From Phaeosaccion multiseriatum (Eukaryota; Protista; Ochrophyta, other classes): a stretch of DNA of 64,000 nt. A program made the position numbers and the translations under genes. Where the stretch lies: NCBI GenBank assembly GCA_965112735.1, contig OZ218950.1, forward strand, positions 992,001-1,056,000. Direction: 5' to 3'. Shown piece by piece: positions 1-16,600 of this stretch (position 1 is its first letter; the number at the start of each line of letters is the position of its first letter). Under the pieces are notes generated by a model. That model was not told the origin of the DNA. It worked only from the letters and a program-made list of their open reading frames with translations, and ran no database searches.

Positions 1-994
1 TCCTCGCGTGTTCACAGTGCTGAGGGGCTTTTTAAGAATTATTGCTGCTGCCCTTGTCCACACACAGGCACGATACCGGCCGAGCTTGGCGGATTACAAG
101 AACTGACGGTGCTTAGTCTCCACAGCAACGAGTTGACAGGTGGGTTACAGGCATGATGCCATCCACACCTCGTCCCTTCTCTTCGCGTGTTCACAGTCCT
201 GAGGGGCTTTTTAAGACGTGTTGGTGCTGTCCTTGTCCACACACAGGCACGATACCGGCCGAGCTTGGCGGATTACAAGCACTGACGACCCTTAGCCTTT
301 TTGGCAACGAGTTGACAGGTGGGTTTTTACAGGCATGATGCCATCCACAGCTCGTCCCTTCTCCTCCCGAGTTCACAGTGCTGAGGGGCGTCTTAAGACG
401 TGTTGCTGCTGCCCTTGTCCACACACAGGCACGATACCGGCCGAGCTTGGCGGATTACAAGCACTGACGATCCTTAGCCTTTATGGCAACGAGTTGACAG
501 GTGGGTTTTTACAGGCATGATGCCATCCACAGCTCGTCCCTTCTCCTCCCGAGTTCACAGTGCTGAGGGGCTTTCTTAAGAGGTGTTGCTGCTGTCCTTG
601 TCCACACACAGGCACGATACCGGCCGAGCTTGGCGGATTACAAGCACTGACGGTGCTTTGCCTTAATGGCAACGAGCTGACAGGTGGGTTACAGGCATGA
701 TGCCATCCACACCTTGTCCCTTCTCCTCGCGTGCTCACAGTCCTGAGGGGCTTCTTAAGACGTGTTGCTGCTGCCCTTGTCCACACACAGGCACGATACC
801 GGCCGAGCTTGGCGGATTACAAGCACTGACGATCCTTAGCCTTTATGGCAACGAGTTGACAGGTGGGTTTTTACAGGCATGATGCCATCCACAGCTCGTC
901 CCTTCTCCTCCCGAGTTCACAGTGCTGAGGGGCTTTCTTAAGAGGTGTTGCTGCTGTCCTTGTCCACACACAGGCACGATACCGGCCGAGCTTG
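1..994 (+). repeat. Tandem array of ~179-183 bp LRR exon+intron cassettes (5 full exons plus 1 truncated visible; array continues upstream of window)
   Basis: Unit = 72-nt exon + ~107-111-nt intron (gtgggtt(ttt)acaggcatgatgcc...cccttgtccacacacag), repeated with few differences. Confidence 0.97.
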
Positions 995-13678: not shown

Positions 13679-16600
13679 ATGACATCCCGGGACGTGTTGG
13701 TGTCGCTGTTTAATTGCACGGGAGGAGCTCGATGGAACAAGCACAGCGGATGGGACGAATTGGGCACCATTACACCGGGCAATCATCGACATCATTTGTA
13801 TGGGGTGAATAAGAAGGGGAGGGAGGGAGTGGGGGGGTGCTATTTAGAAAATGTTACAAGCGTAGTCGAGCTCTATCTACAATGGAATGGACTAGAAGGT
13901 GAGAGACGTGCTTGTCCTTCACGGTCCTGGCTGATGGGAGTCTAAAGAGACTGCTGCTGCCCTTGTCCACACACAGGCACGATACCGGCCGAGCTTGGCG
14001 GATTACAAGCACTGACGACGCTTTTCCTTAATTGCAACGAGTTGACAGGTGGGTTACAGGCATGATGCCATTCACACCTCGTCCCTTCTCCTCGCGTGTT
14101 CACAGTGCTGAGGGGCTTTTGGTGACGTGTTGCTGCTGCCCTTGTCCGCACACAGGCACGATACCGGCCGAGCTTGGCCGATTACAAGCACTGACGGAGC
14201 TTAGCCTTGGTGGCAACAAGTTGACAGGTGGGTTTTTACATGCATGATGCCATTCACACCTTGTCCCTTCTCCTCGCGTGTTCACAGTCCTGAGGGGCTT
14301 TTTAAGACGTGTTGCTGCTGCCTTTGTCCACACACAGGGACGATACCGGCCGAGCTTGGCCGATTACGAGCACTGACGGAGCTTCACCTTAATAACAACA
14401 AGTTGACAGGTGGGTTACAGGCATGATGCCATCCACACCTCGTCCCTTCTCCTCGCGTGTTCACAGTCCTGAGGGGCTTTTTTAAAGTCGTGTTGCTGCT
14501 GCCCTTGTCCACACACAGGCACGATACCGGCCGAGCTTGGCCGATTACAAGCACTGACGGTGCTTCGCCTTGATGGCAACGAGTTGACAGGTGGGTTACA
14601 GGCATGATGCCATCCACACCTCGTCCCTTCTCCTCGCGTGTTCACAGTGCTGAGGGGCTTTTTAAGACGTGTTGCTGCTGCCCTTGTCCACACACAGGCA
14701 CGATACCGGCCGAGCTTGGCGGATTACAAGCACTGACGGTGCTTTGCCTTTTTGACAACAAGTTGACAGGTGGGTTACAGGCATGATGCCATCCACACCT
14801 CGTCCCTTCTCCTCGTGTGTCCACAGTCCTGAGGGGCTTTTTATGACGTGTTGCTGCTGCCCTTGTCCACACACAGGCACGATACCGGCCGAGCTTGGCG
14901 GATTACAAGCACTGAGGTGGCTTCACCTCGGTGACAACAAGTTGACAGGTGGGTTTTTACAGGCATGATGCCATCCACACCTCGTCCCTTCTCCTCGCGT
15001 GTTCACAGTGCGGGGGGGCTTCTTAAGACGTGTTGCTGCTGCCCTTGTCCACACACAGGCACGATACCGGCCGAGCTTGGCGGATTACAAGCACTGACGG
15101 TGCTTAATTTCTATGGGAACGAGTTGACAGGTGGGTTTTAACAGGCATGATGCCATCCACACCTCGTCCCTTCTCCTCCCGTGCTCACGCACGGTAAGCC
15201 CTTCCAGATGGTCCGAAGCCTCCTCTCAGCGGTTTTGCTTGCTTGAATGACTCGTCTCTTGCTCCATACTCCATGGGATTCGACTGTACTTCGCGGTTAA
15301 GCAAACCACGAGTGACCTCCCGAGGAGAGGAGACCCCGCTCTGTCCTGCCTTGCTGCGTAGTAGGTGTAGCATTGGTTGGCGTGACTGACTCTCTCTGAC
15401 GCGCCGATCTCTCTTCTATGCGCGGTCCGCAGGCAACCCCGGTAGGCTACAAGACCGGGACAAAGTGCAGATTTGGCAGCGAGAGCTTCCGCTGACGACC
15501 GAGAGAGATATAGCCCGCTACGAGCTGCAGACTGAAAGGGCCTCCTTCATCACGCTCAAGGCCGAGCTTGAGCAGGCCAGACGAGACACAGAGTCTCTGC
15601 TGGAGGAGGCACAAAGAGCGTCGCTGTCCTCCGGGGTGGGCATGCTGCTGGCCGTTACGGACGCTGTAGCGAGCACCAGAGGCCCCAAGCAGAAGGAGCA
15701 CAGCTCTGAGGTGCAAGAGCAGCATCAGAGAGAAGGTGTTGAGGAAAGGGCCCAACTTCCAACAGCCTCCTGGAGGGGTCTACTCAAGGCGATTGAGCTC
15801 ATGTCCAAAGGCAAAGCGACGCAGGACAATGGCACAATCGGGACAGAGGCTCTGGCTGAGATGGTGCAGGAGGAAAGGCGGGCAAGCGGGCACTGGGACT
15901 CTCTCAAGATGCATCAGAACATACTGAGGGAGTGGAGCCCGCCTGTGTCGGGGGAGGCTCGGGCGGAAGAGGTTAGCATTGGTGAGATCGAGGCGGTGTT
16001 GGTTGACAACAATGGGTTTACGGGGGCGAGCTTGCATGAGGTCGTGGCTGCTCGAGACGGGGAGAGGAAAAACCTGGTGGACGCGATGAGCCAGCTCCTT
16101 CTGATGAGTGCGAGAGAGGAGCTTCCCGACAAGATCGACGCCGAGAAGAGAGAGATCGAGAGTGTAGAGGGTCTGCTGGCACCGCTGAAAGAGTTCCAAC
16201 TGTCATTTAGGGACCTACTTGAGGAGGGCGGAGGGCAGGGCGAAGACGAAAGCTTCGACATTGGAGCGCTGTGGGGGCAGGACGTTGACGAAAGCTTCGA
16301 CATTGGTGCGCTGTGCACAGAGGCGCTGCAAGCTGTGAGCCAGTGGGAGGCAGCGCACGATCTCGCTGCCCTCGCGCAGGGCACTGACGGGTGCTGCAGA
16401 GAGCTAGGGCAGGCGCTGGCGAAAGCGCTTGGGTCGCTGGGAGGCACAAGCCCCGGAGTCGAGGAGGGAGCAGGAGCTGTGGGAGAGAGCGAGGAGGACG
16501 ATGGCGACGTACGGCGATGCCTTCGACTGGCGGCCGAGGCGCAGGCGGCAGTCAACGACGAAGAGAGCGGCAGCGAACTAAGCTCCTTGCTCAAAGACCT

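Follow-up and report, generated by a model that had tools for sequence, protein, structure and literature searches.

Two tandem LRR-kinase paralogs with type I LRR exons, mosaic repeat arrays and a rapidly evolving predicted binding face

The stretch of DNA analyzed here, 64,000 nucleotides of contig OZ218950.1 of Phaeosaccion multiseriatum (positions 992,001 to 1,056,000 of the forward strand; hereafter the window, with coordinates counted from its first letter), contains two tandem paralogous genes in which an array of leucine-rich repeats (LRRs), each encoded by a single short exon, is combined with a protein kinase domain and RING-like zinc fingers. The LRR exons belong to the type I class described in brown algae, and we consider it quite probable that the two arrays are shaped jointly by recombination of repeat units in the germline and by diversifying selection. 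Every unit lies in frame between stretches of about 108 nt of near-identical intron, and under the proposed mechanism germline unequal crossing-over and gene conversion would add, delete and mix units; the protein would survive this gain, loss and mixing because its units are in frame and flanked by similar introns. Strong diversifying selection would at the same time alter residues 15, 17, 19 and 20 (and, to a lesser extent, 22) of each repeat. The outcome would be a fast-evolving binding surface on a conserved signaling chassis, and the most plausible role of the protein is that of an intracellular recognition receptor from a multigene family.

LRR exons were identified by a pattern scan combined with translation. 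The window holds 12 complete LRR exons, all of them 72 nt long, preceded by AG and followed by GT, and all of them phase 1/1, with two bases of a Gly codon at the start of the exon and one at its end. The LRR introns are 107–111 nt long and the tandem units 179–183 bp; Tandem Repeats Finder (TRF) reported periods of 179–182 and 361–362 in the arrays, over spans 1–995 and 13952–15188. The original prediction, which was made from the letters of the sequence, had described one 72-nt phase 1/1 exon per LRR in units of about 180 bp, and all 12 were recovered with their AG and GT flanks and with translations that match the listed peptides exactly. Its count of 12 full exons was likewise correct, except that exons A3 and A5 have the same sequence, leaving 11 distinct exons among the 12. 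The arrays and their exons are as follows:

1–995, plus strand: array A of copy 1 (3' part), with five complete LRR exons; the array extends upstream past the window edge
68–139, 247–318, 429–500, 612–683 and 791–862, plus strand: LRR exons A1–A5, 72 nt each
974–994, plus strand: 21-nt remnant of an LRR exon (GTIPAEL); its acceptor is intact, a GT may act as its donor, and its use would keep the frame
13977–15130, plus strand: array B of copy 2 (whole array), with seven LRR exons
13977–14048, 14156–14227, 14338–14409 and 14519–14590, plus strand: LRR exons B1–B4, 72 nt each
14698–14769, 14877–14948 and 15059–15130, plus strand: LRR exons B5–B7, 72 nt each

The 21-nt remnant is probably skipped in splicing. 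Searches of the 64-kb window by tblastn and motif scans detected no LRR exons outside the two arrays on either strand, and no orphan, antisense or splice-site-less cassettes.

The consensus of the repeat, GTIPAELGGLQALTVLSLxGNELT, conforms to the periodicity of the plant-specific class of 24-residue LRRs (LxxLxLxxNxLxGxIPxxLGxLxx). Residues G1, P4, L7, L13, L16, L18, N21 and L23 are present in all 12 exons, with F18 in B7 as the sole exception. Altogether, 14 of the 24 residues are invariant, residues 15, 17, 19 and 20 take five or six states each, and residue 22 is either E or K. As anticipated, variation is focused in the central segment of the repeat, with codons 15, 17, 19 and 20 carrying 71% of all exon differences. 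Mean pairwise divergence is 0.41 in the five variable codons, compared to 0.032 in the rest of the exon and 0.066 in the introns.

The four most variable sites (15, 17, 19 and 20) had been named in the literature beforehand. Selection was assessed with Nei-Gojobori counts and by comparison with the intron rate. The 12 columns of these four codons contain at least 21 changes, compared to 26 in 107 intron columns (p=1e-9) and to 9 in the other 60 exon columns (p=1e-10). In the variable codons, pN is 0.43 and pS is 0.30; the respective values for the scaffold codons are 0.027 and 0.045. Thus, non-synonymous change at the binding-face codons exceeds every neutral yardstick about six-fold (uncorrected) and the remaining protein about 25-fold. 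Divergence of the variable codons declines from the first (0.59) through the second (0.43) to the third codon position (0.21), an order that suggests selection acting on the residue and not a local hotspot of mutation. The hypervariability of the four residues of the predicted concave face is strongly supported, and diversifying selection on them, and to a lesser degree on residue 22, is its probable cause.

The two arrays belong to tandem paralogs, given that self-comparison of the window showed 95.5% identity between 1199–5969 and 15190–19929. This agrees with the earlier statement that the rest of the gene is nearly identical between the copies, as does the finding that no exon is common to both arrays, the nearest A/B pair differing at 4 nt. 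No register shift makes arrays A and B collinear. Exons A2, A3 and A5 have a common intron haplotype that was not found in array B, and the downstream intron halves of B3, B4 and B6 are identical while the exons themselves differ at 8–10 nt. In addition, 17 of the 45 pairs formed by 10 informative sites outside the variable codons failed the four-gamete test. These conflicting intron and exon relationships, together with the four-gamete failures, imply unequal crossing-over or gene conversion between units since, or around the time of, the gene duplication.

The original prediction went further in describing the LRR introns as almost identical and homogenized, and the synonymous sites of the scaffold as conserved along with them; these claims did not hold. 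Mean divergence of the LRR introns is 6.6%, the same as that of the other introns of the two copies (6.3%), and the synonymous sites of the scaffold (4.5%) do not differ significantly from the introns (p=0.11). Introns this similar are to be expected from the age of the duplications, and we therefore do not treat intron homogenization as an independent finding. The introns show no extra conservation, no match to any Rfam family and no unusual RNA fold, with folding no better than that of shuffled sequences (z = +0.85); the idea of a hidden RNA in the introns was rejected on the last two of these results.

The two copies represent a multidomain gene with the following order: LRR N-terminal cap, LRR array, coiled coil/linker of about 490 residues, protein kinase, and RING and Rcat-like zinc fingers. 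Copy 2 is a complete gene according to its open reading frames (ORFs) and splice sites, with 14 exons and a coding sequence of 3996 nt that encodes 1331 amino acids without internal stops. Its 13 introns are of the GT..AG type, 78–302 nt long and rich in C and T (58% compared to 43% in exons). The 3' exons of copy 2 were mapped from copy 1, with every splice site conserved. Outside the LRR arrays, the exons are the following:

1053–1202, plus strand: copy 1, terminal 150-nt exon with a divergent LRR and C-terminal cap (GSIPAELGEVHNLQYLTLEGNQLRGTIPVELGSLPRLSYACFTPGNPDLH), phase 1/1
1462–2756 and 2953–3138, plus strand: copy 1, coiled-coil/linker exons, from ORFs and splice sites
3274–3627, 3751–3924 and 4102–4926, plus strand: copy 1, kinase exons, the last of which also carries the RING1-like zinc finger
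5097–5534, plus strand: copy 1, last exon, with the Rcat/RING2-like CPxC...GC...C..C...FC..C module and a C-terminal helix; stop codon at 5532–5534
13679–13898, plus strand: copy 2, first coding exon, with the start codon and LRR N-terminal cap (…LVSLFNCTGGARWNKHSGW…), ending in phase 1
15433–16727, 16924–17109, 17259–17612, 17736–17909, 18068–18892 and 19063–19500, plus strand: copy 2, coiled-coil, kinase and RING/Rcat-like exons

The kinase domain was recognized by the Pfam Pkinase model well above the cut-off (E=3.7e-19, 69.6 bits against a threshold of 31.7). It contains the HCDLKPSN motif, with DFD in place of DFG and a degenerate Gly-rich loop. The Rcat-like segment (CPRC…GCFALKCGRC…FCAYC) aligns with the Rcat domain of CUL9 (E=0.029) and with those of parkin, ARIH1 and HOIP, at scores below the family thresholds. 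No clear IBR domain was detected between the RING1-like and Rcat-like parts. Pfam searches of the downstream ORFs showed no Roc or COR domain, and the gene is therefore not a ROCO gene; the proposal of a kinase/E3 chassis in place of ROCO is borne out for the kinase, with the zinc fingers qualifying as RING/Rcat-like only. The terminal LRR exon matched, repeat by repeat, the ectodomains of plant LRR-RLKs (GSO1, FLS2 and ERL) in PDB. No hydrophobic segment, signal peptide or membrane span was found in the protein, which is cytosolic. Comparison of the paralogs gave dS of 0.043, dN of 0.017 and omega of 0.40, with both frames open over 1089 non-LRR codons: the chassis is under purifying selection.

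Two further observations concern the exons and introns of the chassis. The coiled-coil exon of both paralogs contains a 42-nt tandem duplication (2262–2344 and 16233–16315; GQGEDESFDIGALW / GQDVDESFDIGALC), which is accordingly older than the gene duplication. An intron in the kinase domain opens with a (GT)n microsatellite, with 31 copies at 3925–3986 in copy 1 and 21 copies at 17910–17951 in copy 2.

We compared 13650–19600 with four public runs from the same organism, whose contigs are short. Three of these runs (X2–X4) are DNA-like, with contigs passing through introns, and they include contigs identical to 13702–13981 and 14300–14418. The remaining run (X5) is RNA-like: it contains a GT..AG joint from 16726/7 to 16923/4, at the predicted coiled-coil intron, and its loose ends after 14409 and 14590 run on into the start of an LRR exon. 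A joint in X5 that "goes back 72" corresponds to the junction between two LRR exons, and in another X5 contig, with a loose end at 15432, the coiled-coil exon follows directly on the end of a cap exon. The first coding exon of copy 2 is represented by an RNA contig spanning 13650–13815. Because the X5 junctions sit at the predicted borders, the model of one exon per LRR is backed by transcripts. RNA contigs also hold an LRR exon variant (…LQALTVLSLHSNELT) that is absent from the 12 exons of the window. Apart from this, DNA contigs of X3 and X4 include a joint that "goes back 105" (15601->15497) within the coiled-coil exon, which may reflect a tandem duplication in another paralog or allele.

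Copy 2 appears to have lost the counterpart of the terminal LRR/cap exon of copy 1:

15186–15193, plus strand: copy 2, putative deletion joint, at the counterpart of 996–1202 in copy 1

At this site, the intron that follows B7 is joined directly to what remains of the lost exon, its final 4 nt (CACG) and its donor; the predicted splice from B7 to 15433 keeps the frame despite the loss. Ahead of 15190, one DNA contig from run X2 has the cap exon in a third version (…GCCTCTTTTACTCC…), which represents either a further paralog or a polymorphic deletion.

The brown-algal precedent to which the original prediction appealed exists and agrees with our findings even in the exon register and in the sites under selection. 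In Ectocarpus, the type I LRR exon is 72 nt long, with nucleotides 3–71 coding for 23 residues and the consensus GxxPxxLxxxxxLxxLxLxxNxLx, and is found in 37 ROCO genes, five LRR-kinases and 46 other loci (Zambounis et al. 2012, PMC3341825). The ROCO genes in that genome show exon shuffling and positive selection at sites 15, 17 and 19 (20), which map to the concave face in a model based on PGIP; the LRR-kinases are reported to be unclustered and to show no sign of exon shuffling, with positive selection on their LRR exons (PMC3341825). The system was confirmed in four brown algae by Teng et al. 2024 (PMC11378527), who presented an AlphaFold model and alternative splicing, and reported the same four sites, numbered 14, 16, 18 and 19 with a start one residue later. 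The exons analyzed here are type I exons in length, frame, register, consensus, selected sites and shuffling. With the LRR-ROCO genes of Ectocarpus and Saccharina they share one 72-nt exon per 24-residue LRR, the register of two bases, 23 codons and one base, the consensus, and the selected sites 15, 17, 19 and 20 on the concave face; in both cases, moreover, recent paralogs are near-identical except for the rearranged LRR array, and the proteins are cytosolic. The effector part is different, consisting of a coiled coil, a kinase and RING/Rcat-like fingers here and of ROC-COR there. The introns differ as well: here, they are uniform (107–111 nt) and, apart from the 21-nt remnant, no dead or antisense LRR exons were found in the window, whereas those of the brown-algal genes are long and contain dead and antisense LRR exons. 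The Ectocarpus LRR-kinases share with the present genes the type I LRR exons, the protein kinase and the positive selection on LRR exons, but the genes in the window form a tandem pair, their arrays are mosaic and not collinear, and they carry an additional RBR (RING-between-RING)-like module.

Several points weigh against the interpretation favored here. Classical dN/dS inside the variable codons is only about 1.4–1.7, with very few synonymous sites, and the strong rate result accordingly relies on the introns as the neutral yardstick. The sample consists of 12 exons that, being repeats, are not independent, and codon 22 was chosen after seeing the data. The placement of the variable residues on the concave face is borrowed from the published models of the type I exon and from general knowledge of LRRs, and the putative loss of the cap exon in copy 2 is read from the assembly sequence, not from reads. 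In the chassis, the matches to Pfam IBR_1 (E=7.8e-4) and to the RING families are below the cut-offs. Ligand binding, an immune function, and the kinase and E3 activities are what we infer for this protein.

It is conceivable, if improbable, that positive selection is absent, the surface residues being simply unconstrained, and that gene conversion has erased differences from the introns and the scaffold, leaving old mid-exon differences to survive. The mosaic units show that conversion or recombination does happen, and both pS (0.30) and third-position divergence (0.21) in the variable codons are above the intron value. Against this, the unit introns (5.6–7.0%) are as diverged as the unrelated introns of the copies (6.3%), with no sign of extra homogenization; the order of the codon positions fits selection on amino acids; and the same four sites are under selection in brown algae. 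Conversion tracts that spare the same 12 nt in every unit would furthermore imply selection against homogenization, which is itself selection for diversity. Accepting diversifying selection, the gene could still be a fast-evolving one that is not a pathogen receptor, with LRRs that bring endogenous substrates or partners, themselves variable, to a kinase/ubiquitin-ligase scaffold. We regard this as possible although unlikely. Relatives of the chassis in Chromera, Tribonema, Polarella, Tetraselmis and Hondaea have ankyrin or LRR N-termini and no known immune role, in line with this idea, but comparable rate excesses on the concave face are typical of genes for host-parasite or self/non-self recognition, and the gene is tandemly duplicated and part of a multigene family. 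Such excesses in LRRs are established for plant R genes and for the variable lymphocyte receptors (VLRs) of jawless vertebrates.

That the arrays diversify within an individual, whether somatically through recombination or gene conversion as in VLRs or through regulated exon skipping as in DSCAM, appears very improbable. In its favor, every unit keeps the frame and has homologous introns, exons of this kind are reported to be alternatively spliced in Ectocarpus ROCO genes, and the RNA contigs contain the exon variant outside the 12 of the window. That variant, however, may stem from the upstream part of array A or from paralogs; every cassette is a spliced exon of a gene that is intact in the germline, with no orphan or antisense ones in the 64 kb; and the DNA contigs of the three runs, which drop rare variants, show no alternative joints inside the array. 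For brown algae, neither somatic recombinants nor a recombinase is known (Teng et al. 2024, PMC11378527). The VLR comparison drawn in the original prediction does not extend to cassette assembly. The genes in the window share with lamprey and hagfish VLRs the interchangeable LRR cassettes and the variable residues of the concave sheet, but a VLR gene in the germline lacks parts that are copied in somatically from flanking, non-spliced cassettes, whereas the 1331-aa germline ORF is complete, its cassettes are ordinary spliced exons, and the window has no flanking, orphan or antisense cassettes. If within-individual use of the cassettes were true after all, it would amount to an adaptive-like repertoire of LRR-kinase-ligase receptors in an alga, a possibility on which the 2012 study speculated for Ectocarpus. 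That the arrays are an artefact of assembly, with tandem repeats collapsed, expanded or chimeric, is hardly credible. Units of 180 bp with about 93% identity are difficult for short reads, only 60% of the 31-mers of the window are present in the public runs, and a contig has a cap exon ahead of 15190 where the window has the deletion. Yet the units are distinct, with 11 different exons, array B is only 1.2 kb long, both reading frames are intact, and the exact DNA matches and predicted RNA junctions described above fall within copy 2. On this evidence, nothing points to somatic or programmed diversification, and germline duplication and recombination of units together with diversifying selection, which account for the data, are the best supported explanation.

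Plant LRR immune receptors (NLR, RLP, RLK and PGIP) resemble the proteins described here in the 24-residue plant-type LRR and the hypervariable, solvent-exposed xxLxLxx positions. They differ in their effector domains and in having LRR domains that, for the most part, occupy one or a few large exons; the present proteins, in addition, lack a signal peptide or membrane span. The kinase/RING/Rcat half has homologs with 35–45% identity (E down to 1e-114, locally) in Chromera, Tribonema, Hondaea, Polarella, Tetraselmis and among many metagenomic proteins, the best named match being that from Tribonema; an exhaustive HMMER search yielded no protein with more than 45% identity. None of the 30 best hits that were looked up came from a brown alga, and a search of the ESM Atlas with the kinase/RING exon returned only generic kinase clusters. 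Relatives that combine the kinase with RING/Rcat-like fingers include Cvel_6266, Cvel_13004 and Cvel_17561 of Chromera velia, KAG5191561.1 of Tribonema minus and GBG34857.1 of Hondaea. These protist proteins have a homologous C-terminal half and an N-terminal domain of the repeat type, but their N-termini mostly consist of ankyrin repeats, or of ankyrin repeats with two or three LRRs, and no amplified one-exon LRR array is known in them.

A one-exon-per-LRR system with selection on the concave face has been known in brown algae since 2012. The new elements are the kinase/RBR-like chassis, the reshuffling in a pair of LRR-kinases and the compact arrays; the host lineage, outside the brown algae, is probably also new for the system. 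ROCO GTPases are not the only proteins to use the cassette design: type I exons are joined here to a kinase and ubiquitin-ligase-like chassis that, combined with other sensor domains, occurs widely among protists. For a published candidate immune system of heterokont algae, the locus offers an unusually clean view: its introns are short and uniform and provide an internal neutral reference, which the four binding-face codons exceed about six-fold in rate. The short C/T-rich introns, a remark in the Phaeoexplorer preprint and the best named match in Tribonema tentatively point to a host that is a non-brown relative of brown algae, at a guess a Chrysoparadoxa-like one; if this is so, the system predates brown algae. 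Furthermore, array B (1.2 kb) fits into a single long read, which makes the distinction between somatic and germline variation directly testable.

The remainder of the window is rich in repeats, with 200 repeat rows reported by TRF in the 64 kb, and such repeats make up most of the spacer between the paralogs. Very long pure microsatellites include (GTGA) with about 405 copies (9066–10681), (AGG) with 135 (6484–6889), (CCT) with 290 (41303–42172), (CA) with 261 (43507–44023) and (CACT) with 105 (47758–48175). Three coding regions on the minus strand were also noted:

30738–32600, minus strand: 620-aa ORF with a WD40 beta-propeller
37573–38742, minus strand: ORF with a TerD domain (E=4e-7), from a mostly bacterial family
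48192–51920, minus strand: ORFs with the SM-ATX, LsmAD and PAM2 hallmarks, suggestive of an ataxin-2-like gene

A word-based search of 5.8 billion proteins with the WD40 ORF gave no match at E<=1e-10.

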